Part shown: positions 25,885 to 52,500 of the stretch, one piece after another
How positions within the stretch are numbered: position 1 is the first letter of the stretch
Layout of the letters: the number at the start of each line of letters is the position of its first letter
Origin: Klebsormidium nitens
Taxonomy: Eukaryota > Plantae > Klebsormidiophyceae
Assembly: GCA_000708835.1 (NCBI GenBank)
Contig: DF236958.1
Span: 314,692 to 378,691, forward strand
DNA length: 64,000 nt
Direction: 5' to 3'
Made by a program: the position numbers and the translations under genes
Notes under the pieces: generated by a model
Seen by the model: the letters and a program-made list of their open reading frames with translations, nothing else
Databases searched by the model: none
What the model was told of the DNA's origin: nothing

Positions 25885-28800
25885 CTACTCAGCAACGACA
25901 ACAACCTTCCCCACCGAGTGCCCGTCGATGCTCCGCTCCCAGGCCTTCTTCGCCTCACTCAGCGGATACTTACTATCGATCACCGTTTTCAACTTCTTAT
26001 CGCCCACGAGATCCACCAGCGTTTGCAGATCCTTTGAGTTCGCCGACAGGATCAGGGGGATCAACCTCTGCTTCGAGAAGGTCGCCGCCTGCAGCGCGGA
26101 CCTCGCAATGTAACTAGCCCCGGGGGTAAAGCTGACCACCTTCCCATGCTTGGCGAGCACCTTCTGCCAGTGATCCCACGGCTCCTCCTTGGACGTGCAG
26201 TGCAGGATGACGTCATACGGCTGCTTAGACGCGCTCTGGAAGGGGTTGGCGGGGTCGGCCAGCTTCTTGTAGTCGAGGACCTCGTCGGCGCCCAGGCTCT
26301 TGACGAGGTCGATGTTGCCCGTGCTGGCGGTGGCGGTGACGTGGGCGCCCGCGTACTTGGCAAGCTGACGCAAAGAAAACGCAAGTGTGAATAAGCCCTA
26401 AAAGTACTTTACCTTGTCAATGATTACATGGTTGAAAGATTGTCCTGCTTTTGTGCATCTTCCGATATGTCCGCGCAAGGTGACGAACGAAGTGCCTAGC
26501 TAAGAAAGCCGACGTCAGCGCAGTCAACTGGTTCCGTGTCGTTGTTAGAAGGGTCTGCAGGTGACCATCTCAAAACGACGACTCTCTTTTTGCACTACAT
26601 ATGAAACGCTAAGAACCTGACAATTATTTATAAATACAGTGCTTTTGTTGTCCGTGCCAAGTAACAAACCCAACTTCAACAAGAGATTCAGGTGCTTGCA
26701 GCCTTCACAACAATCTTGTCGAAAAAAACTTTCGCCTTCGAACGATCGAGATGATACTTGGATGCGCCTTGTCGACATAGACCGCCTGCAGTCAACAATG
26801 AAGGGAAGCAAGCGCACATGATAGCTTCGATATCAGGAACGGCCAACGTACCTTTCACAGGACGCACAGGTGAAGAAACCACCAACATACGAATCTCATG
26901 AGAAACTTCCTGTAATAGTTCGAGATCGTGGTGGCATCTCCACGATGCTCGACTGAAGACGTGGGCGATTAGAAAGGAACCGTTTGGGTCCATGCGAAGG
27001 CAAAGATGTCCTGACCTTTTGACGTTGGTTCAATAAACTCTGACGTAGATTTGATCTTCATCTTGAGTGGTTGATCGCAGCCATATGTTCGGCAGGCAGC
27101 CTGTCTACGGTTCCCTAATCGTAATAGAAATACTCAAAATGCTACTTCGATCACGCTCGACTCGACATCCCAAGAGAGCCGCTTCCCTGAACGCTTTCGG
27201 GTCTGTTAGAAGCTCATTCAAATAATTGCACTCTTGATCACCGTTCAATGACTGTCCTGAAAATGGCCGGCCGTTCCTCAACAAGCCTTCGGAGCCGTTC
27301 GAAGCGGTTCCCTTCGAATTGGCCCTTAAACGGGAATTCTTCATACGAGCTTCACCTTGCCCTTCGACTCGTTTGCTGGCCTGGAAAAAGGGCTCGCTAA
27401 AATGAACACCGAATCGTCCCCGTTGTCTCACCTGCACGGCATAGTGTCCCACTCCTCCCGACGCTGCTTGGACCAGTACGCGCCCGGTGCCCTTGGGGAA
27501 CGATAGGCCCCCCTTGATGAGGCCTTGGAGTGCGGTCATGGCCGCAACCGGCAGGCCTGCCGCGTCTTCAAAGGAGACGCCTGGTGGCAGTCTGGCGATT
27601 GTCTTGGTGTCAATGACTCCGTACTCAGCGAAAGCGCCTTGATGCTGTTGGGGGAGAAAACAATAAGTTGAGCACGATCAGGAAACATTATTGTTGAAAC
27701 GACCGACTATTTAGGCTGGGTCTCTCTGCTCAGAACGGCTGGACTTTAGAAATGAACTCTCGAGCTGCAAATGTTCAAGGTCGGGACGACATTGTTTGAA
27801 ACGTCTCAGTGGCTGACTCCGAAGTTCAAGGCGCCACAAATTGGTAAGGAGGTGACCACGCTACTTCAACAATGGGCTTTCACACACAGAGTCACACAAC
27901 CACAGAGAACTTGATTTGTTGCACACTGGCCACCCTGAAACAACCACCAGCAGAAATTCAAGACTGAAGTCCCGGTACACAGTGCAGACAACATCCAGAT
28001 GGAGAAGACTTTTCTGTGACTCACATATACGTCGACCTTGGCCAAGATCCTGTCACCAACTGAAAAGCCAGCTATATTGGAGCCAACAGCAGCGACTGTT
28101 CCAGCAAAGTCGGTGCCTGCACAATAAATAGTCAAGCTATTGATCATTAAAATCAGCCAGCAACTCCCTCCTAAAAAGGCCCTTCTATGAACGCTCAGAC
28201 TCTGGTAACTTTCGCAATCTGTGGCCAGACTTACGAAACAAAATGCTCTACTTTGCAGGTCAGTCTGTAGTGACCTGGGACAAAGTTTCTAGCATTGCTA
28301 GATGTCGGTTTGGGATGCAGCCCCGCTTGTTTCAAGCCCCCTAAGTTGGATTATGCCGTCATCTCTTGAGTACTAACTACCTGACTTTTCCCAAATAGGA
28401 GCATAGGAAGGAACCTACCTGGAACCATAGGCAACTTGATCCATATGACTGCTTTCAAAGCGCCAGACTGGATCTTCCAGTCTACGGGGTTCACGGAAGA
28501 TGCGTGTATCTGCAAGAAAGGCAGTACTTCTTGTTAGCAGTCAAGCTGCCATTCTGATGGTCGCAGACCCTCTGTCTTTGCATCATGCTGGCATCTGGTC
28601 CAGGATTCATGCGTGACTAGCTTGCTCATATAGGAACAGTTAACAAACCATAAAAGCACACGCGACGGAGGTAGTTATGACTTGTGATGGACCACTTTTG
28701 TGAAGGCGTGCAGGCAGTCCCCAGCCTGCCGTCACGAAGGCTGTGACCAAAGCACCTTAAGTGCATGCATTGGCTCATAAGCTGGACAGTGAACATGCAT

Positions 28801-29244
28801 GCATTCCAGGGCAATTGAGCTTTTAAGAGCGCTCACCTTCAGAAGAATCTCATCTGGCCCAGGCCTTGGCACTGGCTTGTCCACTAGCTCCAAGCTACCA
28901 GCCCCACCACCATATTGCACGTACTGCCATGCTTTCATCTTTTCTGGAACTGCGGCCATGCTGATCGTTCCTCTGCTTCGAGCAGTGAATGGCTGCAATG
29001 GTGATGCCGAAGATCCTTGTAATACACGCAGTGGTGCAATTCGTGCCAAAAACTTACTGCCACCCAGAAGAGCTGGAACGGGTGCGGACTTCACAGATCT
29101 TCCAATGCTGGGGGAGTGCGTAGGTGATCTGAAGAAAGCCTTGGCAGGGCAAGCAGGATGCGCTATGTGGCTTTTCAAGAGAAACGTGCCGTGGGGGCGG
29201 AATAGCAGAGTAGCTGGCGAGCTCGACAGAACCAGCTGCGGCAT
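25885..29244 (-). CDS. ceQORH: Chloroplast envelope quinone oxidoreductase homolog (MDR-family NADPH oxoene reductase)
   Basis: Exons 29244-28837, 28509-28419, 28116-28025, 27644-27432, 26364-25885. QYGGGAGSL, VNPVDWKIQ, AAGLPVAAMTALQ, AASGGVGHYAVQLAK, VKSLGADEVLDY, VIDSKYPLS..AWERSIDGH closely follow Arabidopsis At4g13010 as I recall it. Confidence 0.93.
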
Positions 29245-29420
29245 GTTGACCACCTGGGTTTTTGTGTGTGCAACACAAAGAGGAGCTGCTGCAGCTCAGG
29301 TCAGAGCTCTGCATTTGACGAGAAGAAGGAACCCGAGCTGAAAACCCTATTTCAGTGAAACCTGGTGAAACCCCACAAATGTAAAACCCTGATGTGTTCA
29401 TGTATTCTGAAAGCAACTTT

Positions 29421-29435
29421 CTTCTAGAAGCTTCC
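29421..29435. promoter_or_regulatory. Perfect three-unit heat-shock element between ceQORH and DJ-1D
   Basis: cTTCt-aGAAg-cTTCc, alternating inverted nGAAn pentamers. A telo-box-like AAACCCTA lies nearby (~29342). Confidence 0.6.
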
Positions 29436-29621
29436 AAGTTCGCCAGATTGCCCATGCATTCCAAGTTTTGTTCGAAGGCAATGGAACGGCTGTGGGCAAT
29501 CCAACGAACATAACGACCTCTCAGCTGAAAAATTTAGGATTGGTTGCATTGCAATCAGCTGCTGCGCGCATTGTCCTCCATTTTCTTCAATAGGTTAAGC
29601 GGGATTTGAGAAAGCGCAACC

Positions 29622-32600
29622 ATGAGGAAGGTTCTATTCATCGTGGGGGACTACTGCGAGGACTATGGTAAGTTTTCCTACTTGACAAGCTCATCACCAT
29701 GTGCACGTACTGATGCAATCCTTCTACAATTCTTCTACATCTGTTGAGTGCCTTAGTTGATTGTATGAAGGGCACCTTGTTGTTTTGCCCCTTACGGTGT
29801 TCTCCTTGCATCCATTCCACGCTTTCACCATGAAACCAACCGGTCTGACAATGCGGGGCTAACACTGCTTTTCCGTGCAGAGGTGATGGTTCCTTTCCAG
29901 AGCCTTCTTGGTTACGGCTTTCAGGTACGTGTTTGCAGGTGTAGGCAATCAAACAATCCTCCAAATGATCGATTGGGGCATGTTTGTTGGAACTGCGTAT
30001 CTCCTAGGGCGTTGATTCAAGCAATGCAAATGTTGCAGAAACATGTTTGTGAAGAAATTGTCATGATTGGTACATCTTAGGGGCTTAGCCATACTGGGCC
30101 AAGTGGTTGGTTGATTATTCAAGTGCCACCACCAGGTGTACATTCCCAGCTAATTGTTCCTGCTCTGAACTTGACATTGACATCTGCATCCCTTTCTGTT
30201 TTCAGTCCGCATTTGATGCCCACTGCATACGGTATGTAGTCTTTTGACCTATCCAACTGCCTGACAAGGAAAAGTGGGAAGTCATGACAAAGCTCGGTAG
30301 TTGGCTGATGCGATGAAGTTGAAGTTGACAAAGATTGGCAGCATCTCTTTCTTGGTTTATCACAGGCGGATGCGGTCTGCCCCAACAAGAAAGCCGGTGA
30401 CGTAGTCAGGACCGCCATACACGATTTCGAGGGGTAAGGTTAAGCCTAAGTCACTGAAATCCTCAAGAAATTTGGATTACTAGGATCTCAACATCGATGC
30501 TCAAAGTTCTATCACTTGCGCATCTGGTCAATTTGAGGGATAACCATACAGCCAAATCCAGTCCGCATCTTGTCAGTTTTCTGGAAAAGATTCTAATGAC
30601 ACCTTTGGACAGTGTGCTCACCTCAAGCCTTTGCTGAGTATCTCAAGTTTCAATTGTGCCCTCATCTCTGCGAAGCTGAGATGTGCAGTGCCTCTAGGTC
30701 GTTCATAAAGCAATGCATCGGGTCACCTGTCTGCAATCTGTACCTGGGGCGCTTGGTTGAGTTCACTTACGCTGCTCCATCGGGGGGGGTCCCAATCAGG
30801 AAGCTTGACTCCTCTTTCTTTGTCCGTCCAGGGACCAGACCTACTCTGAGAAGCGTGGCCACAACTTTGTCCTCACTGCCACGTTCGCCGAGGTGCACGC
30901 TGATGATTATGACGCGTTGGTAATTCCAGGTAGGTGACAGGTGTCCAAAAAAAGATTCCATGAATCGGCAGCGGAAACGAAGAAGGCTGTTTGATACCCA
31001 ACAAGCCCGATACGCCCCTTCTATCTTTGCTTGTGTTTGCCCCAGCCTCTGACACTGTGTTCGGCCTTGGCCGAGCGTCAAACGTGAGTGGTCCTGGTGG
31101 CTCTCGAGTCCAACTTCGACTTGCATATTCTGACCCAATGGGCAGGTTTGCAGCACTGACAAAACGGGTGTCCTGTCAGATTTCGACCGTCATCCGATTG
31201 GCGGACTGGTTGATCACGAAATTGGGATTCGAGGTCGTTTTCAAATGCTGGGACCACCCTCATGCGTTAGTATTTGAGATTATGAATGGGTTCAGTTTCA
31301 GTTCAAAGGAGTCACAAACAGCCACCAACGACAGTAATAGGGGTACGGCAGGACAGAACGCCAGAGTTCAAACTCGCTCAAGCATTCCCATGCATGACTT
31401 CAGTGCGTGGTGAACATCCCTCCACGGCCGTCGGAATCATCACTGGAATCTTTTCCAGATTTGTAGTCTCCTCCTTGTACCACTAAAAATCAAGATTTCG
31501 AGAAACGCAACCAGAAACGATTTATTTCCGCTCTCTTTCCAGGCGGCCGCGCCCCCGAGTACCTCAGCACCGACGACTCGGTCCTCTCGCTCGTCCGCCA
31601 CTTCTTCTCCAAGAAGAAGCCCGTCGCCTCCATCTGCCACGGCCAGCTCATCCTCGCCGCCGCTGACGTCATCAAGGGCCGCAAGGTGACGGCGTACCCC
31701 GCCTGCCGCCCCGTGATCCAAGCTGCGGGTGCCACGTGGCAGGCTCCCGAGCCCATCACGTCGTGCTTTATTGATGAGAATCTGGTGACGGGCGCAGCAT
31801 GGCCGGCGCACCCCGAGTTTCTGGGGCTGTTTTTGCTGGCCATGGGGGCCAACGTGAGCAACACCGAGAAGAAGGTGCTGGTGCTAGCGGGCGACTTTGT
31901 GGAAGGTGAGCTGCGGCTTTTGTCCGGATGACGGGTGTTTTTGTGAGGTTCTCGAAGTTCAAGCCGTCGAATGATTAGAGGAACCCGGAGTCGAGGTGGC
32001 AGAGCAGGTGATACTCGCTAGGGATTCGAGGTGGAGAAAGGGAGAAAGGGATCCTGGGGCTCAAAGAGTTTGAGGGTTCAGGTTTAGTTGAGGTTGTTAA
32101 AGTGTTGGTTAGGAACGGCCGACTTGTAGCCTCCTCGAAGATGCGGGGACGTGTTCAGGAGACGTCCGACATGCTGTTAACCAAGCTTTTGAGTGCTTGA
32201 ACGGTCAGCTTTTGAAAGATGCCTCTCACAGTTTATTGCCTCTGAGTGAAATAGCTTCTTTCACGAACTTTTCCTTTCCACATATTGAAAGCACGGTTTT
32301 CAGACACAACAATAGCAGCTGGCTTTCACATTAGGGACGGGAAAGTTGGGTAACCGATCAAGTAACAAAGAACCGCAGTCCAAGTAGACAATGGCCAACA
32401 CCTATACTCAGGGGGCATGCCTGCTTGTCATTGTCGAAAGCGATTGCAAGTGGGACTGTTTTGAGGTTCGAGCGTTGTGTACGTCGGATGTTCTGACACT
32501 GAAGCTGTTGAGAGGGCCAACGGCATCAGCTCACCCCCTTGAGTACCCTCGCAACGTCTTTTCAACCTATGTCCCGTACGAAAACGACGTACTATCTCGC

Positions 32601-35600
32601 TCCCGAGGAGCGCCTCGTACGAAAGCGAGAAATTCCGAGCCACTTCCGCTGATTGTGCGAGAGTGAACACGAGCTCTTTTGGATGTCGCAGATTACGAGG
32701 TGATGGTTCCGGTCCAGGCGCTTCAGGGGCTGGGCTACAAGGTGGATGTTGTGTGCCCAAACAAGAAGGCTGGAGACACCATCCGAACAGCGGTCCACGA
32801 TTTTGAGGTACACTCGCCACCTTTCCGTTTCCGTTCCGGTCTCCTCTCAGGAGTGGCCGAGTCGCAGAGTGCTGGTCTGTGGCGAGGATGATTGACGTCT
32901 GGGCGCATGGATGCGTCCAAAGGCTTTCTAATATTCTGAGGCCATTTCAAGCGGTCAAGTGCAGAGATGTCGCTTCGCCATCCTTGCTTTTCAAGCTGTG
33001 CTTCGTAAGTCAGCCCCGTAAGTTGTGATCGATCAAATTGAATCATCGTTTCAATTTGTTGAGAGTTTGTTCTTAAAAGCAGTGCTGTCCTAGCCCTGTA
33101 GATTTCATGAGTAAGTGGTTCGCACTTTGGATTTACCGAGTCCACCACCCGCTTGTCGTTATGCTTGAACAGTACTGTGCTTTTGGAGGTGTTTGCTACT
33201 TAGAAAGTCCTATATATCTTCCACAGGTTGCTTTCTTCTTCTTCTCCGATGCAGCAAGGAAAATGAAGTGTTGCTTGCTGATGTATGCCCAACTAGTAAC
33301 GTACAACGATTTTCAAAGGTTTTCGAGTCCAGTGATGTACTCGGCACTGAAGTTTCCGATCTGAGTCTCAGTACTCACGGCAAGGAAGATATCTGCCTGG
33401 GCGCCTCGTGTGGCCAGTTCTGTAACAAGAATTCCTCCGATGCCCTCACAAGAACAGGTCCTCCTCCTGTCGCCTTCTTCCAGCTTTTCTCTCCTCTGCT
33501 ATACACTTAGTTTCTTGTGGCGGCCCAACAGGGGGCATGCGAATCGCGACCAGACTTGAAGGATGCTGACGGTTCGCTCGTGCGTTGTTGCCTGGAAGCG
33601 TCTTGGAGCTCTCTGATTCCTGCTTCGGATTGATCTTAAGAAGCTCTGAGTCACCGAATTCTTCAGCGTCTTTTGATAGCGTGAGTTTGAGTAGGACAAA
33701 AAAGAACTTCTGCCCACTATCGCTCGCACTTCCTGGTCTTTGTTGACATCCGTGACGATCTCAAGGCATGGGCCCGAAAGTGAGCTCGTTCGACGAGCTC
33801 ACTGAGGCCACTTCACGTTCTCTTTGCCCCCTTTTCTCCGCATGTTGCGTCTTTTGATCCTCTAACCCTGTCTAGATCAGGATTTGCAGTAAGGATTTGG
33901 TGCGGCCCAGAGTCTAGCCAAAGCTTTTAAATCGAACACGAGGCTCCCACTCTACTCACCGCAGCTTCACCATCCTAAGTGCTTTACACAAGTAAATCGA
34001 CAAGAATGTGGCACCCCGCATTCAAGAACTCTCGTCCTGACAGGTTCAGCCTTTGTTCTCTGAGTGCTATTCTTCTGATTGTGATTCTGGCCGTCTGTCG
34101 AGCATACGTTTTCCGGAATGTCCAGGACGCAATTATGGTTTTGCAAGTCTAAGTATAGCCCAAGATGAAGTTCCTGTTCAGTCTGTTCAGGGCTGGTGTG
34201 AGATTTACGCAGCTCTTTGTCTGCGGCCTGCCCTTTTATGTCCCTCTCAAACCCTTTCGCGTGCAGTGTCCGGAGATTGGTCAGAGCTTGGTTTGAAGTC
34301 CATCGATGTCCGCGGGCTGCTACGAAAGAGCAGTAGCGGCAAATCCTATGTTGGGGCAGCTGTTGTGCCGGGACCCTTCCCGGCAAGGATAGTTTTGGTG
34401 GGGGTGAGCTGTCAGCTCATTCGCCCTTGCGTTCTCTGATGCCGGCCATCGAGTTTCAAGGCTTCTTGCATGCTTGCGACGAAGCTTGTGAGCAGCTTGG
34501 CAGCTGGTCTTCATTTCGATCTGTTATGAGGCTGCTTGGACCAGTCCTCAGACGAATTAGTGTGGTTGCGTCTGATGGAAATCCGTCCTGCACAGTCTGT
34601 GATTGTTGTGATTGCCAGCTAGGGTGTCTTTATGAGCGATGTTTCTCTGAGAGCAAGGTGCTTGGATTCGACTCCCTTGCACTCGAAGTCTAGTCTAAAC
34701 CAGTCCTCAAGTCTGCCATCAATGCGAGTCACGACTTTTCCTCGTCGTCAACGCCACTCCAAGTCCACCTTGTACCAACCTGAGCCTTTCTAAAAGTACG
34801 AATTTCCTCCCAAGACCTCTGTGTCGAAGTGAGGCGGTGTTAAAGAAGTCACAGGCCGGAAACCAACCGCTTCGTGCTGATTTCTGGGGATCGTCCCAAG
34901 CCGGCAACGTGAGTAGACTGAGTGCTTGTGGCAATTCGATTGCTTGGTGCTGGCGGTCCATTTCCAATCCTTCAGGAAAGGTTGCTATTGGAGCTTCGCA
35001 AACTGGCGCATATGTAATCCGTGTTGTGTCTCTTCCTGACTGTCACTGGGCGCTCACCCAGGAAAGACTCCTCCAGCCTAAAGCAGCGCCAGTACTTGAT
35101 CGTTGAAAGCTCAACAAACCGGGTTTAACGACATTACAAATTGTTTTCAAATCGGCACACACCTTCGGTACCTTTCTTTGATTTTTTCACGCCATCCGAA
35201 AGGGTTGCAAATATCGATTTTTAGGCTGGTCCGTGATGGTTAAAAGGCCCTGGGCTCTAAACAAAGTCCAGTCATTGCCGCTGTTGAGGCCCAAAAGAGT
35301 GCCCCTTTGTTGTTCGCTCTTTGGTTCCTCCAGAGCTTGCAGTATTGCAGCCCTTTTCGCAGCAGATGGCGGGTGCTTATGACGCAAAGTTGAACCGTTC
35401 TCGTCATGAAATTGGGTATTGATGTTCGATCCCCTTGTACGTTTACAACTTTGCCCGCCTGGCCTGGACTCTGCTTCTCCCCGGCAAGGATAGCAGACGC
35501 CTAGGCACCAGAGAGTGTCACAAGATTCACGGCCTGTCTGATGCCATGGGACGAGGGTCCTCAACCAGAGTGGCAAAACAAGTGTGGCAAAACCAGTGGC

Positions 35601-38600
35601 AGGAGTCCGCAGCTTCACGCCACTTTGCTGTGTCCCGCGATTGAGGTTTGGCGCGGTAACTCAAATCTTCAGGGCCTGTAATAAAACTCAACTGATGGCT
35701 TGCGACTGGCCCTTGTGACGTCGGATGTGTGATCCGCTCGGGAGCTATTGTTGGTTCAGATCTTTCTCAGCAAAGCAGCACTCGTTGCTGAAGGCAGATT
35801 CTCCCTCTTTCCCCCTGAAAAAGTTTCCTTTGAAGTCGAAACAAGCAAGGCGAATACCTGGTCCGTTTCTGCCATGAGAAGACTCGAACGAGCTTTTTAA
35901 ATGATCTGGGACCGTGTCTGACTCCATTGACCGGCTTTCGGAACATCCATGGTATTACAAGTCCGGTATGCTCAACTTGTCATTGCGAGATTTACTATAA
36001 CCCTCCTTAAGGTCTACAAATTTTCTCCAAGTCTATTGAAATGCTGGGATCCGAAGTTTGATTTCGATTTTCTCGGCATCCTGAGCCTTCTTGGATACAC
36101 CCTGTTCTATGGCAAGGAACGCTTGTTCGGATTGAGCTCATGCCAAGAAGGGTTTGAGAACTGGATTCATCTTCACGTTTTTCTGCTGCTCTACGAGAGT
36201 ATAAGGGAGTCTCTCACACAAAGGTCGTTCAAACAACAGTTGTTGCACTTTTGGTTTTATGCTTCTGAGCGGCTATGAAGAGCTTCGTAAAACCTGCAGA
36301 GGCGTAAACAGAACTTGTCGGCCACTGACGCTGCCAGGCAAAGTCGTCATTGTCCTTTTATTTCTTGTTTTCTTGGCTCGTGTCAAGCGCTACCTTCCTT
36401 CGGCTCTGGCTCTGCAGCCCGCGGTCTGGTTATCGGGACCCGTCATTCTGAATAGGGCACATGGAACAAAGAGTACGTGCGTTTGTCGAGACGGCAGGTT
36501 AGCTTTAGCCAACTGATAAACAATTTTCACTTGTTGATCTTGCAAACCTCCAAGGTACGAATCTCTCTCAACCAGATTTGTGGTTGCCAAAGTAAGAGTG
36601 GTATTTTGTGTGTGTCGTTGAGATACACCCGTAAATGAACGTCGCAAATGAAGATTCCTTGCCGCGGAAACATTCCGCAAAACCGTGCAACAATGCCTCC
36701 GACGAAACTTTTCGCGTCAACACCGTTCAATTTTCAACTGCAAGTTCGACAGACTTCGGAACCGTAAATGGGGTCTTCCTCTGCTAATGCGTCATTTGAC
36801 TCCACAAGGGCTGGTAGCCCTACTGCTCTTGACAATCTGTGCCGAGGTGCCCTGTTTTTAGGGTGGCCGTAAAGGTTGCGGGCCCTGTGCTTCAGAATCC
36901 ACTGACCGAGAATCCATGTCAGTTTTCTTTTTGAGGCACCTCGTCCCGAAAATTCGTACATTATGCGCCTCTTCATAGCGGAACAACTCAGATTATAAGC
37001 ATGCCTAGCGGCAACCAGAGACAAGCACTCCGGATCGGAGTAAAGCTCAACTTCTTTCCTTTTTGTCTTTCTAGATTATTTGTTAGTATTTGCTTTGGCA
37101 GCCGTTGGACAGCACGTCGAGCCTAGGGCACTCTACCTCTGCAGAGGTGACCTTTCCGGTGTCTTTGAGGCGCTACTGTTGGTTGGACAAAGACTTTTGC
37201 CCGCTTGAAGTTGCACGCGGGTCGTCTTTATGAGCGAATGCTACGTCTTCCACCCTTGGCAACAGTTTCCAAGCTTCGCCTCGTTTCGTCCGTGCTTCGC
37301 TGGTTGACGCCGAGCACAAATCGCCTTGGGGCTGAAAATTTGGAGTTCAGTTATTTCCCCGATCCATTCGTGACGCTGTTGGCTCGTGAAGATCAGAACG
37401 TGGCAGCGCTCAAGTGTTCGCTTATGATTCTTGGAACCCTTATGTCTTAGAACAAGACGCGGCCAGAAAGAAGCTGTAGTCGCTCATCTGTCATGGGAGC
37501 AGCCGTGTTCTTAAAACTGTCCCCTCTTCCGGCAAGGATAACACCTGGGCGTTCAAAATCTGCTCAGAGGTTGCGTTCTCATGATGCCGTATAAGGGGAC
37601 GTGCCTGGGTACCGCCCTACGCAGCCTTGCTTCTTCCATCCTCTGTGGGCGTTTCGTAAAGACCCGATACTAGATGAGCGGAACATGTAATCTGGAAGCA
37701 GATCCGTGATTGATGTCTGCGTTGTTTTTGTTATGCTGCATAGTAATCTGGTTCAGGTAGGCTCTATTTGTTCTTCGGTCTCTGCTTTAAGATATCGATG
37801 AAGCAGGTTCACGAAGATTCATCCGTTGTCAGCGTTGGAAGAAATCGCAACGAAGAACTCTGACGCTGCAAAACCTCAAGTCTCGAGCCTTCGTCGTTAG
37901 TCTTTGGATGTGGATTGTATCCACACTAGATCGTTATTTCACGGACGATAAGCAAGCGGAATTGGACAGGCCACTGCCAATGGGCGTCCTTCCGGCTCTC
38001 CTGGCAGATCAACACGCGTTCCACTCAGCCGCACAGCTACAGCAACCCCTTCTTGCCCCCCGCCTGCCCTTAGCTGCAGATCGGACCAAAGTCACTTTGC
38101 TGAGCCAGCCTCGAGTGTCAACTTGGAGACAGCCCTGATTCAAAAGTCAAGACGACATCAGAAGACTTCCACATTGCAAGTCGAAATCTGAGTCCCTTTT
38201 TCCTGTATCAGAGTTGTACGTTGAACCAGCTTAGACACAGTTGGAAGGACGCGCTCCGCACCCATACCCCAAGTTAACCTTAATCATCCTCCGGGCGCTG
38301 ATTTATTTCTCCCTGGCTGCACGTCAACTGGAAATTGACACTACCCTCCTCTCGTCTCGTCCCGCAGGGCGACCAGACGTACAGCGAGAAGCCCGGCCAC
38401 AATTTCAGCCTCACCGCCGACTTCGCCTCCGTTTCCGCTGACGGCTACGACGCCCTGGTGGTGCCCGGGGGACGAGCCCCCGAGTACCTCAGCCTGGACG
38501 AACAGGTGCTGGAGTTGGTCAGAGACTTCACCCGGGCGGAGAAAGTGGTCGCATCAATTTGCCACGGGCAGCAGATCCTGGCAGCCGCCGGCGTGCTCAA

Positions 38601-39964
38601 GGGCAAAAAGTGAGGGAGTCGGACGTACTGCGACGGACTTTTCGCTTTGCTTCGTTGCTTTACTGGCCTTTCAGAGTATCCCTTGTGAGATCGAGGAGCC
38701 GGAGTGCTTTCGGTTTCAGGACTGGTGGCGTCATTCGCCGGGGTCTGCGTTTACACTAAAAGTGTGCTTCGTGTCCCGGGGTTGATAGTCCGGATGCCGA
38801 CAAATGGCCCTGTTCAAACATCGCAGCGGCAGCAAGTAGCAAAGGAAATGGTTGCAACAAATGGCGGCTGTCCGACTCAACGTAGAGGCACAAAATCGTC
38901 AAGTGGCAGGACGTTTACATCTTGCATTAGGAAGCTGAATGTTCACTTGTCAGCGCCTCTGGATTCGTGTCAGGTTCGCGGAATTGGGTCTTACTTCGAC
39001 GGAGAAGTCGAGTGTCGTTATTTCGTCAACTTCTGTCAGAAGCTTAGTGGGGCGGAACGGGCAACACCGCAAAGACTGCAACAAGTTTCAAAATTGGCAA
39101 TGCAGAGCTTATTCCGGACCCGGTTGCAATCTCTCCAGCATCAACAATCCTTCGCACTGCAAAAGTGGAATTGTGGATCTTGGCTCTTATACCGACTGAT
39201 CACATGTGCCTTCGTGCCCGGACAGAATTTACAAATTGTCTGAGAGGGTAAAGTCATCAACGGGGTCAGGGTGGTCGTGGTGCGGAGCACGTAATGTTTC
39301 GGTCTCAGCTTAGGTTAAGCTGAGGTCTTGATGATTACTGATTCGAGGAATGTTCCTGGCAGGTGCACGGCCTACCCCGCAGTGAAGCCGACGATCCTGC
39401 TGGCCGGGGCGGAGTGGCTGGAGCCGGACCCCATTTCCAAGTGCTTCACGGATGGCAACCTGATCACCGGGGCGGCTTGGCCGGGTGAGAGTTGTTTGTG
39501 CTCCTTTGTGCTTTGGTCATCAATGGTCGGTTCTTCACATGTTTTACAAGAGGCGGAGTGATTGAGAAGAGGACGCAGTTGCCCGGTTGGGGATCTGGCG
39601 TTCCCTGGATGGGGCTGTGTCTGTCACGGATAGCAATGAGCTGTAATTTCAAGATATCCTTAGCTGATAATCTGCATATATATTGCAGTACGTCACCGAC
39701 GTTTGGTCCTACGTCACTGAGACGAGCATCGTGAAATTTTCTAGGGGCGTACGTGCTGAATATCCTTACTCTGCCTTCGTCCAATTTCATGCTATTTGAT
39801 TGTTGTACGTTGCCGTACGTATTTCCCGGTTGTCTCAAGGTTGTTGACGTGCTACTGATAAGTGCGGAGGTTTTTTTACTGACAACGAGCATCTGCCTGC
39901 AGGACACCCGGAATTCATCTCCCACATTGTCAAAGCGCTTGGGACAAAGATCAGTGTGGAGTGA
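29622..39964 (+). CDS. DJ1D: Two-domain DJ-1/PfpI protein (DJ-1D type, glutathione-independent glyoxalase III)
   Basis: Exons 29622-29667, 29881-29924, 30366-30433, 30832-30929, 31543-31905, 32692-32807, 38368-38609, 39363-39484, 39903-39964. Both domains have GD(Y/F)x[17 protein letters not shown] and catalytic SICHGQ. Confidence 0.95.
33190..38270 (-). pseudogene. Decayed, internally repeated coding-like sequence antisense within the 5560-bp intron 6 of DJ1D
   Basis: Intron 32808-38367. One minus frame runs about 311 codons (36119-35187) with 5 internal stops. The 12-mer ccggcaaggata (YPCR on the minus strand) occurs at 34380, 35481, 37529; the 14-mer gtctttatgagcga at 34626 and 37224. No transposase or RT motif seen; boundaries approximate. 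Confidence 0.45.
33779..33803. other. Perfect 11-bp-stem hairpin
   Basis: agtgagctcgt-tcg-acgagctcact. Confidence 0.8.
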
Positions 39965-41251: not shown

Positions 41252-44200
41252 TCAACGCGGCTGAACAGACAGGCGCCCAGCCCGGTTCATCTCACGCTCA
41301 ACTGCTTCACTAACGTAGATAAAGCTGGCAATGCCCGCCTTATCGCACACGTCCCTGACGCGGATTGTATCGTCTGTGTGCTGGGTCCGGGCCAGGTTTT
41401 CTAACAGCTTCATCGCACTCCTCTTCTTCAAAAGCACGTTTCGTTCTAGCATCTTGTCGAAGATGTGAAGGGCGCCCTTCATGTGCAGGTTGTCGGCATA
41501 TGCATACAAAAGGTTGTTGAAGCTTGCCACTTTCTGCAGAACATAAACAGTCCGGTGTTCAGCGAGATGCTATACATATGCGGAAATACCGCAAGCTCGC
41601 CTACGACTCGCTAAAGGATTTCTCAAGCCGTACGACCCATACATGTCCTGCGCGCGACGAAGCTTGAAGAATCAACTGGACAGCACTCCGCTGGACTCAA
41701 GTGCCCATTTCTGATCGAGCCAAGCATCCAGCTCGTTTGCCTAAGCAAGCCGTGACCAGTCCCCAAAATCGAGGCTTAAAACGTCATCTTGTGGGCTTTT
41801 ATGGTGCTGCTTTTGAACTTAAACGACAAAAAGCATGCAAACCCAAAATCAACAACCCCAGCTATCACCATAGGAAGCCAAGGGCTTCGAGATTCATTCC
41901 GGTAGCCTGCTACGGACGCTCACCCATTTCCGCTCCGGCCCCTCCTTCTCTACCAGTTGCCGTACCCTCTCCGTCAAACTAGATGCGTCGAGCGGGGGGT
42001 CCGGTCCTGTCCACCGGACGGTGTCGTACACCACGGACGGCCCCTCCTGGCTGCGCAGGAGCGTCCGCAGCCACTCGTCCTCACCTGAAGCAAGAGGAAT
42101 ACTTGAGACGTTCGGAACTGGATACGTGCGAAAGTCGTCCGGATTGGGGAAAAAAGAAGAGTACGTGAAGCAGCCAGAATTGGCAACAGGCAAACTCGGT
42201 TTTCAACTAAGAAACGGTTTGAGGCGCTCGGGACCAGCTACGTACGCAAGAGCTCACGTGTTGAGTGACCCTCGCAAACCAAACCGGATGCAACCTGGTT
42301 CGATTTGCGGGCGTTTCTGCGGACTGAGCCTGGATACTGGATTCGTACCGGACCTTCTATCAGAGCAAAGCGCCCAATCCGCTGCATACAAAAGATAGAC
42401 GGAGAACTGGAAAAGCTGCTCGCAAGCCTGCTGTCGCGCGCATTACCTGGAAAGGAACGGCCCTGAGAGGAAACGGAAAGAAACGGAACTGGGAACGAAG
42501 GAAGATAAACCAGGATCCCCACGGCAATCCGAAACCAATCATATTTTGCTTCGTACCTGTTGCAGAACTAGACGACGGCTGCTCCTCTACCAGCGACTCA
42601 GCCCCCGTTCTTGACGTGCTCTCTTCAAAACCCCCACTCGCAGGTGTAGCTCCCGCCATGCCCGCACCACCCTCCGTATCCACTGCCACGTGGCTCCCTC
42701 TCCTTGGCCGGCCCCGCCCCTTCTTCTGACGTACATACACGTCATCCGGGATGATCCCCTGGAAGCTGCCCCGCTGCAGGGCCTCCTGAACCTGGTCGGG
42801 GCTGACGTGGCAGTCCCGCCGGAAGATCCCGTGGGTGACGTCATTCGGGCGCAGGCCCGCGTCGCGCATGCGCTCGAGGGCGTCGAGAGCCGCCTCGAAT
42901 TGCTGGGTGCGCGCGTAGTGGCTGATCAGCGTGTTGAACGTCACCTGGAGAATGCAACCACTCTTGATAAGATTCACAACAAGCTATCCCCGGAAAGCAG
43001 AGTCAATCTCAAACTTCTATCCTTCTATTCGAACGTGCAGTTGAGAACTCTATCTGCCACCTTGTCCTTGTGACCAGAGATAATACCAGCCTAATAATAT
43101 TTTGGGCAACTTGTGGAGCGACAAGCTGCAGTGAGCTTGAAGGCTAAAGGCTAACAATACACAGACCATCATATCAAAAAAAGAAACTGGAGACTTCACT
43201 CGCCGCGAGAACCGGCCTTGCTTTGCTCAATCTCCATCCACATAACAGTGCATCGCAGTCTGCAAGGCTCAAGAACTTGACGTCAATGGCACAGCCTCAA
43301 GCCAACCACATAGCGTGGTAAGCTCGGTCTTGTCCGCCGCACGTGACCTTAACCACGGCCGTGCTCCACAACGATTACATCCCATTCCCTCACCTCATCC
43401 GGGGTTACGCCCGCCGCTTGCATCTCCCCAAAGACGCCCTCCATCGCCTCGAAGTCCCGCACGCGCCCGTACCCGTTCATCCGCATGTTGTATCCGTTCG
43501 CCACTTTCGCCATCCCCTTCGACCGCATCTCCGAAAATACCGCCTCGGCTCTCGGCAACTGATTCGACTTGGCAAACACTTGCAGGACGGCGTAGTACGT
43601 CATCTGCAGGGGAGGAGCAGCGGCATCCCGTCAGCGAAGCCCGTGCTTACGTAAAGACGAGAGCCAGAACGTGGCGTTGGTGATTATCACAGGCAGAGAT
43701 TGCATTAAACAGCAATGCAAAAGGATGGAATCAGAGATCCATTGGGTCCTGGTGGCTTTAATCCTCCTACTTGATGCCCACGTCTATTCTGACCCAAGGC
43801 GCAGAGGTCAACCATCACCACAGTAAAGCTTTTCAGTGGTTCATGAGAACTACTGAACCTTCGAAAACTGTATGAACCATGAAAAAGAAGTTGCTTGAAC
43901 CAGGCGTTGACATATTGCCGGTGTTTGATGCGCTCTCGTCATGACGAATGCTTCTTTAGGTCTGACCGAGAAGAAACAGCGGACCAAAGTTTTTGAGCAC
44001 CTCCCAACACGATGCAATGTATATCGAGGCCGATCGCTTTCGCAAAATCCAAAAGTCTAAACCCTCAGACTTCGAAGCCCCCCTACTGTTTGCGAACTCA
44101 CCGCTGGCAGCTGCCTGCCCTGCTGCCGCATCTCCCTCCACAGCTCCTCGACGGGTTCCCACTCGTTGTTTCTCTCGCACGCTCTGCAAAAGACGTTGAA

Positions 44201-49514: not shown

Positions 49515-52500
49515 ATGAGCAATCTGATCAGCAAATCTAGTCAATCAGCCCTCTTCAGAGCTCATCTGCAAGTAGTAGGCAGTTGTGCAAGTTGGTATGA
49601 ATCGAAGGCGAGTTTAAAGGCATCTTCTCTGTTTGCATTCCTCAACAGCCCGCCAACTTGTCTAACTAGTGGAGCTCAACTGATCAGGAAGACAACGACT
49701 CATCGACCGAAACAGTCAGCCCACCGAAATTGCAGAACCCCTCTGTGCTGTAGTTTCAGTGTTGCTGGATCTCTCACCTCCTTCAGCAGCCAGCATTTCT
49801 ATACGGACCCAAAGCCAGCATTATCATCACGTGGCGGCACTGGGAGCTGTCAAAAGATGCCCTCTGCAACATCAAACACTCTGCAAGGAGACATAGCGGC
49901 TGTGAAAAGCACAGTGGTTGATGAAATGCAATCGACACACTCGTCCTCGCCCCCTGAGCCTGTGCTAAGTATAAGTCTGATTGGTAATCACACAACAGAG
50001 GTCTTGAGTGTGGACTCCAGCGAGCCTCCTTTGGTGCATCTTGTAATTATCCCTGGCAATCCTGGTAAGTGACGGAGTCAAGTTTCAGCCTGAGAAGTGG
50101 TGGTGCCGTGCGGGGGCTGCGCCCCCAAACCCACTCAAATCAGTGGCGCAGATTGCTTCCTTGCTTTTTTCCAAAGTGGCTTTCTCAAGTCGCGCTTGCA
50201 TATTGCTGATTATTGATTGATCTTCACAATACAAAGTGATTTCAGGACTCCCTATCCCAGACTGGTTCGTTGTTTGCAGTCCTGTTTATTAAAGCTGGTC
50301 ATATTGTCTGACCAGCCCTTCAATGTAAAGCTTGCACGTACTTTGGGGGCCAGACTAAGCTTACACCAGAGTTCAACCTGCAGGTATTGTTGCCTACTAT
50401 GAGGAGTTGATTGGCCTAATTTCAGAGGTCGTCAGTAGAAAGTGGAAGATCACATGCATAAGTCATGTTGGTCATACACAGAGAGATTGGGAAAAGGGAA
50501 AGCTGTCATCACTACAGGCAAGTGATCCAATCAAGGCAACTCATTCTGTAAGTGTTAGATGACTCAGATGATCAACTCATAAGTTGTTGCCAGTCATTCC
50601 ATAATAGTTATATGTGCTGGACCTGATGTCATCCGCTGAAGCAAGGCGCACATTGGCAGCTGGTGACAGGCTCGATAAGGACAGCTTCGGTTTTGAGTTA
50701 CAGTACTGTGGAAGGAGTTGCACTTTGGTCCTTGATAAACGTTCCCCACACCCATACAGTCTGGACCTGATTGAATCTCCGTTTTGGTTTGGGACAATGC
50801 GATTTTGGGGCTTCTTGAATCTTCCAACAGAAGTATTTCCCTCAAGAGAAGTCAAAGCGAGGTCCATGGGGCCTCTGCCAAAACTTCAGAAGAATGAGCG
50901 CTTGAGAAGCGCGTCACTTGCAATTCAAAAAAAGGCCCATGACAGGGATGAACCAGGCACCTCCATGATCAGGCATTGGTCAACGCAAGCCTTTCTGACT
51001 CCAGGTATGCCACTCATGTGCAGGACCAGATTGAGCATAAGGCAGCCTACTTGAGGACTCTGGAGGACCAGGGCCTTCCAGTCATTCTTGTGGGGCACTC
51101 CATTGGGGCGCACATTGCGCTAGAGCTCTTGAGACGCTTTCCAAAGCTTGTCACAAAAGTCATCGGGCTCTACCCCTTCCTGTCGGTAAGGCACTGATTT
51201 GAACATCTGCATCTCGTTCTGTTCTTTGGTCATGAAGATCGGACCAACTTCTGATCGATTACAAACATGTCTGCAGATTACTCCCTCTGTTAAACATTTG
51301 CAGAATCTGGAGCTTAATATAGATAGCAGGTAGACGGTTTCTATTGTTGACGGATGTGGAGAAGCGGTTCTTCAACAGTACCAATACACGAAGACCGATG
51401 CTCCTCTCGACTTGGCTTTTTGAGAGGAAACTGTGGATCTGCGATTCCGCGCTTTGCTTCGTAGCCAGTCCCTCGAAGAATGGAATGGCGTTCAAGATAG
51501 CGTCCGAAGTTTTGGGGATGTTTCTCTGCTCATGCCCCGGCACCTTCGACGAGCTGCGAGCTCTCGCATATTCGTCCCTCCTCTCATCTTAGTTTCTGAA
51601 GCAATATCTTGAAGTACACCGCTTACCTTCTTGCAGCTCAATCTTGATTCATCAGAGCAAAAGATCCTCGGGAGAGCGACGCGCTTCTATCCGGCGAGGC
51701 TAGCATTCAGTACCCTGGCCGGTACTCTGGGCTTCCTCCCAGCCAGTCTGCAAATGGCTTTGCTCCGAAGTACGATTGGGAAGGCCTGGGACCAGCCAGC
51801 CATCGACGTCACTCGCCGGTACATGCTGACCGTGAGCAAGCCACTCGTTTCTCTGACGACAACCATTGGTCCTTAGATGCTTGTTTCAGGGCTGGGGTTG
51901 ATTAGCAACTTGTTGTCCATTTGCTGCCCGAAGTGCCAGGTCGGGGCCTTACCTGCACCCGTGATGCCCAGGGGTTTGCGACCTTGGAACCGAATATGGT
52001 ACGACAAGTTTGAGAGAGTCTGCGGGGCTTCGATCGATCTTTTGGAACGAATTCGGGAGCTTAGACGAGACTGTGAAGCTGCCCTTCCTTTGCTAGGTTG
52101 GATTTCTGTTGACTTTTCTTGAGCTTTCTTACTTTTAAAGCAGTCTTATTGCCACGAGTGGATAGTCGTTGTGATAATTGAACTGGTCGCCTGTCTTATG
52201 ACCTGCCAATCTCGCCTCTAGATTTTAAATTTGCAATCGGAACGGGCGAGACTTGGGACGGCTGTATGAAGGTTCTGATGCCTCTTACCGTCCACCGAAG
52301 CAGGCCCGAAGATCTGTCGGGGCCTGACAGATCGTCCCCGACAGACGTCACGGGGATTAAGAACCGGCAAGATTGCCGGGGCAAGGAGTGTCCAAATTTC
52401 AGTTCATGTTTCGAGTGAGACATCTGGTATGAGGAGTTTTTAGACCTAAGATCGACGCTCGTTCGCTTGTTCAGCTACCCTTGCTACTTACTCAATCCGA

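Follow-up and report, generated by a model that had tools for sequence, protein, structure and literature searches.

A head-to-head ceQORH–DJ-1D gene pair in Klebsormidium nitens with a single heat-shock element in its intergenic spacer

Do two unrelated carbonyl-detoxifying enzymes of a streptophyte alga share one heat-responsive promoter? The question is raised by a locus of Klebsormidium nitens, contained in a 64-kb window of contig DF236958.1 (positions 314,692 to 378,691; all coordinates below count from the first base of this window), where two divergent nuclear genes, both annotated in GenBank, lie side by side: a ceQORH-type oxidoreductase gene on the minus strand and a DJ-1D gene on the plus strand. 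An original prediction, made from the DNA letters, proposed that the 377-bp spacer between their start codons carries a perfect heat-shock element (HSE) and serves as a bidirectional promoter through which heat-shock factors (HSFs) co-induce both genes. If the HSE does drive both genes, the heat-shock factor pathway would be tied directly to reactive-carbonyl detoxification in an alga closely related to the land plants, and the locus would be a compact example of functional gene pairing in such an alga. Our analysis bears out the identities of both genes and the presence of the HSE; on balance, the element is probably either incidental or not strong enough to define a heat regulon common to both genes. 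What stands at present is a correct annotation accompanied by an attractive regulatory hypothesis that is as yet unsupported.

Matches to solved structures identify the product of the minus-strand gene as a ceQORH-type NADPH oxidoreductase, a member of the medium-chain dehydrogenase/reductase (MDR) family. The GenBank protein GAQ78208.1 (P0245, 332 aa, annotated as ‘Zinc-binding oxidoreductase’) emerged from a cluster that also contains a relative of the gene's last exon. Threaded onto the window, it matches five minus-strand exons exactly, separated by GT-AG introns; these exons were also checked by eye and by translation. The exons and the N-terminal extension discussed below are as follows:

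28837-29244, minus strand: ceQORH-like exon 1 in the long reading frame, open from the ATG at 29244, with its donor GT at 28836-28835
28959-28837, minus strand: ceQORH-like exon 1 as in the GenBank model, from the threading of GAQ78208.1
28954-29244, minus strand: transit-peptide-like N-terminal extension, 97 codons relative to Arabidopsis ceQORH (AtceQORH), 95 of them upstream of the GenBank start
28419-28509, minus strand: ceQORH-like exon 2, from the exact threading of P0245
28025-28116, minus strand: ceQORH-like exon 3, from the threading of P0245, with a weak Pfam ADH_N match
27432-27644, minus strand: ceQORH-like exon 4 with the AASGGVGHYAVQ nucleotide-binding stretch, from the P0245 threading and the alignment to 5A3J
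25885-26364, minus strand: ceQORH-like exon 5 with the stop codon ending at 25885, from the P0245 threading and the match to 5A3J

For the long, 427-aa form of the protein, the exons were searched one by one. The top solved-structure match for exons 1, 4 and 5 was Arabidopsis ceQORH (AT4G13010; PDB 5A3J/5A3V/5A4D), a chloroplast-envelope oxoene reductase and the closest known relative of the minus-strand gene. Residues 102-136 of exon 1 align to AtceQORH (5A3J) residues 5-39, exon 4 aligns to residues 103-174 (E value 6.6e-10) with the AASGGVGHYAVQ stretch identical, and exon 5 matches with an E value of 6.6e-40, the next chain (1.3e-7) being more than 30 orders of magnitude weaker. Pfam ADH_zinc_N_2 was detected on exon 5 (E value 2.7e-24), which together with the weak ADH_N match indicates a zinc-independent fold of MDR type, and the last exon shares ~50 % identity with plant proteins that bear the name ‘chloroplast envelope quinone oxidoreductase homolog’. 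The assignment to ceQORH made in the original prediction is therefore borne out by a wide margin. The species also has ceQORH paralogues on other scaffolds (kfl00444_0110 and the AOR-like kfl00004_0220).

Where this gene begins decides how much of the locus is spacer. The ATG at 29244, from which the predicted spacing of 377 bp was measured, is present, as is the plus-strand ATG at 29622; the GenBank model, however, begins the minus-strand gene further in, with ATG 28959, the codon for Met96 in the long reading frame. We favour 29244 as probably the true start because the 95 intervening codons are open, because their composition is that of a transit peptide and because the same methionine is kept in relatives. 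The 97-residue extension contains 0 Asp/Glu, 11 Arg/Lys, 20 Ser/Thr, 12 Ala and 12 Pro, and related algae yielded two open reading frames (ORFs) in Logan assemblies, P0001 and P0002, that are 85 and 74 % identical to exon 1 and begin at the same Met1. Substitutions and two in-frame indels are all that sets them apart from K. nitens exon 1, and the similarity stops abruptly right after the exon-1 donor site. The ceQORH-type product is thus probably 427 aa long, and the algal protein probably carries a classical transit peptide that is omitted from the GAQ78208.1 model; from this we infer that it is targeted to the plastid.

The alternative is that the GenBank start is the true one, in which case 28960-29244 would belong to the 5′ untranslated region (UTR) or the promoter, the genes would be separated by 662 bp, and the protein would be an Arabidopsis-like 332-aa enzyme with no presequence. 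GAQ78208.1 is annotated in this way, and Met96 aligns near the N terminus of Arabidopsis ceQORH. Moreover, AtceQORH has no transit peptide and is imported by a non-canonical route, a family feature that the protein would share if it began at the GenBank start and that the long K. nitens form, with 97 residues added, lacks. Set against this are the open upstream codons (chance ~0.01 by our own estimate), their transit-peptide-like composition and the two relatives that keep the extension with the same Met1 and exclusively in-frame indels, and we consider a start at 28959 unlikely. For specialists in chloroplast import, the probable transit peptide may be the weightier by-product of this work, the Arabidopsis protein being the textbook case of import independent of a transit sequence.

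The plus-strand gene encodes what its sequence identifies as a cytosolic-type, two-domain DJ-1D, a predicted glyoxalase III. GAQ78209.1 (P0124, 386 aa, ‘putative DJ-1 family protein’), found in a 90 % cluster with a relative of DJ-1D exon 5, threads exactly onto nine exons at 29622-39964 (+), and all of its introns are of the form GT...CAG. The threading of P0124 and P0245 onto the window served solely to define exon borders, which for this gene are:

29622-29667, plus strand: DJ-1D exon 1, from the exact threading of GAQ78209.1/P0124
29881-29924, plus strand: DJ-1D exon 2, from the same exact threading
30366-30433, plus strand: DJ-1D exon 3, from the same exact threading
30832-30929, plus strand: DJ-1D exon 4, from the same exact threading
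31543-31905, plus strand: DJ-1D exon 5, covering the end of domain 1 and the start of domain 2, from the threading of GAQ78209.1
32692-32807, plus strand: DJ-1D exon 6, from the exact threading of GAQ78209.1
32808-38367, plus strand: DJ-1D intron 6, 5560 bp, from the threading of GAQ78209.1
38368-38609, plus strand: DJ-1D exon 7, from the exact threading of GAQ78209.1
39363-39484, plus strand: DJ-1D exon 8, from the exact threading of GAQ78209.1
39903-39964, plus strand: DJ-1D exon 9 with the stop codon, from the exact threading of GAQ78209.1

Two DJ-1_PfpI domains are present (Pfam, two stretches, E value 4e-95), and residues 2-384 of P0124 align without gaps to Arabidopsis DJ-1D (PDB 3UK7, 4OFW; E value 3e-165), with the SICHGQ nucleophile elbow and the EDYE motif in both halves of the protein (3UK7 alignment). 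The identity given to this gene in the original prediction is thereby confirmed over the full length. Arabidopsis DJ-1D (AT3G02720), a glutathione-independent glyoxalase III acting on methylglyoxal and glyoxal, resembles the K. nitens protein closely (388 versus 386 aa, colinear, no indels, two domains). The start codon at 29622 is secure, since the frame is closed by a stop a few codons before the ATG and the N terminus aligns to AtDJ-1D from residue 2. The K. nitens gene differs from that of Arabidopsis in its unusually long intron 6, which measures 5.56 kb compared with 213-786 bp for the other DJ-1D introns and is T-rich on the plus strand. No repeat of intron 6 elsewhere in the window and no convincing ORF within it were detected, and an Rfam search of the 25-41 kb interval returned no match.

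Together, the two genes form an ordinary head-to-head pair, with transcription running outward in both directions from one short intergenic region; GAQ78208.1 and GAQ78209.1 are neighbouring accessions on a common 474,224-bp contig. Their ATGs lie 377 bp apart if the start at 29244 is used and 662 bp apart with the GenBank start, and either choice leaves the genes within the 1 kb taken to define a head-to-head arrangement. We infer a promoter function for the spacer. No second copy of its sequence occurs elsewhere in the 64-kb window. The features that bear on its regulation are:

29245-29621, unstranded: inter-ATG spacer, presumed shared promoter region, 377 bp, GC 0.46
29422-29434, unstranded: perfect three-unit HSE TTCtaGAAgcTTC, an exact match and the sole HSE dimer or trimer in the spacer
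37808-37820, unstranded: second perfect HSE, inside DJ-1D intron 6, used as a background control
50812-50824: third perfect HSE, in the plus-strand gene at 49515-51197, where it separates two exon-like ORFs
29355-29388, plus strand: three copies of GTRAAACC in a 34-bp stretch, in the half of the spacer nearer to ceQORH (three of the eight matches in the window; 3.5 expected window-wide)

The GTRAAACC triplet may represent a candidate cluster of factor-binding sites. The spacer additionally contains two AAACCCT (telo-box-like) heptamers (29342-29348 and 29384-29390, plus strand), a motif that is not enriched window-wide (12 matches versus 8 expected).

It had further been suggested that the 5′ UTRs may be spliced and could overlap, on account of AG dinucleotides just before the start codons. 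These are present at 29593 (+) and 29254 (-) and are compatible with splice acceptors. Every one of the 12 acceptors verified in this gene pair reads CAG, and their pyrimidine fractions span 0.47-0.88; the plus-strand candidate is a TAG behind a good pyrimidine tract (0.82), and the minus-strand candidate is a CAG behind a weak one (0.47).

The HSE itself lies where it had been predicted. Defining an HSE as nTTCnnGAAnnTTCn, that is, at least three contiguous inverted nGAAn units, we found an exact match at 29422-29434 (motif TTCnnGAAnnTTC; with flanks, cTTCtaGAAgcTTCc at 29421-29435). Its centre is 5 bp from the midpoint of the spacer, and the two ATGs lie 184 and 194 bp away. It consists of exactly three units, with no fourth on either flank, and no further HSE dimers are present in the 377-bp spacer. 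In a first-order Markov simulation, the number of such elements expected in the spacer by chance was 0.004 with the composition of the window and 0.010 with that of the spacer. Across the whole window, three perfect HSEs were found compared with 0.86 expected, a count of at least three being reached in 5 of 100 shuffles. The other two, at 37808 and 50812, fall between exons and are therefore intronic and presumably background. By our own extrapolation, ~70-160 of the ~16,000 K. nitens promoters would hold a perfect HSE by chance, a genome-wide number (of the order of 100) that resembles any plausible count of true HSF targets; the motif alone therefore leaves its function at an even chance or below.

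As to conservation of the pair, a condition on which the original prediction had depended, the two genes are linked in close relatives and not in Arabidopsis. ORFs from JGI/IMG corresponding to the last ceQORH exon (P0246, 2 contigs, longest 27,720 bp; P0247, 2 contigs, longest 29,179 bp) and to DJ-1D exon 5 (P0004, 27,720 bp; P0123, 29,179 bp) have the same contig counts and the same longest contigs, indicating that both genes lie on one contig of at most 29 kb in two Klebsormidium-like assemblies. The linkage is thus inherited within Klebsormidium-like algae. Identity between these two relatives and K. nitens is, however, ~81 % for the oxidoreductase exon and 91-93 % for DJ-1D exon 5, and since synteny is the default expectation at 81-93 % protein identity, the shared linkage is weak support and no evidence of selection. 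The Arabidopsis orthologues AT4G13010 and AT3G02720 are unlinked, on chromosomes 4 and 3. A metagenome scan with an exon-1 alignment returned 16 loci, all distantly QOR-like (31-67 % identity) and none covering the presequence, and a DJ-1 gene stood beside the QOR-like locus in 0 of the 16.

Expression data were consulted for signs of a shared stress response, high-light RNA-seq being among the tests that had been put forward for co-induction. The complete K. nitens table of differentially expressed genes (DEGs) under high light contains no gene mapping to AT3G02720, AT2G38860 or AT3G54600 (DJ-1D/E/F), and the only gene mapping to AT4G13010 is kfl00444_0110, which lies on another, small scaffold (PMC9121098). 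For this pair, the high-light data are negative, though indirect. High light does induce HSP90 and HSP101 in K. nitens (PMC9121098), together with two unlinked paralogues, the AOR-like kfl00004_0220 (11 to 60 fragments per kilobase per million (FPKM), 5-fold) and the DJ-1B-like kfl00052_0190 (5.5 to 30 FPKM, 5-fold) (PMC9121098, Table 1).

Results from elsewhere are mixed. Brassica napus CEQORH is among heat-repressed genes, Arabidopsis DJ-1C and DJ-1E are strongly heat-induced, with DJ-1D not specifically reported to be so, and soybean GLYIII promoters contain predicted HSF sites. K. nitens, which responds rapidly to heat, has a single HSF of class A and a single one of class B. Reactive carbonyls and electrophiles of the 12-oxophytodienoic acid (OPDA) type induce heat-shock proteins, in a thermotolerance system described as ancient, and a link from HSFs to carbonyl detoxification is therefore biologically sensible. 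Our literature search turned up no paper connecting ceQORH with DJ-1 as a pair.

How, then, should the spacer HSE be read? We lean towards an element that is a genuine consensus match but, as a single minimal trimer, would be likelier incidental or weak than a dedicated switch for co-induction, and the pair would accordingly be expected to have no strong shared heat response. This reading is backed by the background rate, with three perfect HSEs in one window and two of them intronic; by the solitary trimer, given that strong heat promoters usually hold several elements, as in rice; and by the high-light list, the heat repression in B. napus and the lack of linkage in Arabidopsis. Several points weigh against it. 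A perfect trimer in the spacer has a 0.4-1 % chance and sits nearly midway between the genes; K. nitens possesses both HSFA and HSFB; reactive electrophiles induce heat-shock proteins in a thermotolerance system called ancient; and plants do have short bidirectional promoters that bear HSEs. Other members of the DJ-1 superfamily (E. coli and yeast Hsp31) are heat-shock proteins. In addition, the counter-evidence on co-induction is indirect, being drawn from high light and from another species.

Much of this is what a true co-induction switch would call upon, with an HSF trimer on the central HSE activating both core promoters so that heat or electrophiles raise the plastid oxoene reductase and the cytosolic glyoxalase III together. 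The perfect nTTCnnGAAnnTTCn match 5 bp off the spacer midpoint and 184/194 bp from the ATGs, its chance expectation of 0.004-0.010, the class A and B HSFs with their rapid heat response and the induction of heat-shock proteins by reactive carbonyls are all consistent with such a switch; the 355-bp bidirectional HSE promoter of rice Oshsp17.3/Oshsp18.0 is a working precedent, and both genes stay on the same contigs of at most 29 kb in two related assemblies. The switch would nevertheless consist of one minimal HSE, with two equally perfect ones intronic in the same window; HSP90 and HSP101 appear in the high-light list, yet no gene of either type does; CEQORH drops under heat in B. napus; the Arabidopsis pair is unlinked; and the algal linkage is what protein identities of 81-93 % would lead one to expect. 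We hold co-induction to be plausible but unlikely. It is also rather unlikely, to a similar degree, that the HSE works for one neighbour while the other is regulated independently. By analogy with Hsp31-type proteins, that neighbour would more likely be DJ-1D, a choice with which the strong heat induction of the Arabidopsis paralogues DJ-1C and DJ-1E, the predicted HSF sites of soybean GLYIII promoters and the heat repression of B. napus CEQORH agree, and the HSE match with its low spacer expectation counts here just as it does for co-induction. Conversely, no DJ-1D-type gene is in the K. nitens high-light list, HSEs act irrespective of orientation, and the site lies equally far from the two genes.

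A more ambitious proposal, which we regard as improbable, is that a feedback loop is closed by the spacer, acting as a true bidirectional promoter under HSF control, with oxylipin ketols and methylglyoxal activating HSF and HSF in turn co-inducing the two enzymes. It leans on reports that OPDA-type compounds activate HSF in K. nitens and in land plants. If true, the plastid enzyme would saturate alpha,beta-unsaturated carbonyls while the cytosolic enzyme removed dicarbonyls, and the locus would amount to an algal ‘carbonyl-stress mini-regulon’ older than the land plants.

Outside the gene pair, two further features of the window were recorded. The plus strand carries a multi-exon gene at 49515-51197 with IPGNPG and GHSIGA motifs, which appears alpha/beta-hydrolase-like by eye and for which Pfam returned no match on the ORFs tested. 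An ORF with PPR repeats lies at 42363-42977 on the minus strand (Pfam PPR_2, E value 3.5e-10).

Finally, the preferred reading of the HSE as incidental or weak can be set beside shared heat-shock promoters that are already known. Divergent heat-shock genes with a common HSE occur in the hsp-16 pairs of Caenorhabditis elegans and in human HSPD1/HSPE1, and DJ-1-fold glyoxalases under heat-shock control are represented by E. coli HchA/Hsp31 and yeast Hsp31. We know of none among these animal and microbial cases that pairs a DJ-1 gene with an MDR oxidoreductase, and the lineages and families differ. The closest likeness is to rice Oshsp17.3/Oshsp18.0, which is likewise arranged head to head around an HSE-containing spacer of similar size (355 bp), one that in rice drives both genes. 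The rice promoter, however, holds several HSEs, serves paralogous small heat-shock protein genes and has proven heat induction, whereas the K. nitens pair has one minimal HSE and joins two unrelated enzymes. An HSE-bearing bidirectional promoter is thus of a known kind, and this pair, both of whose genes were already in GenBank, is a candidate new member of it.

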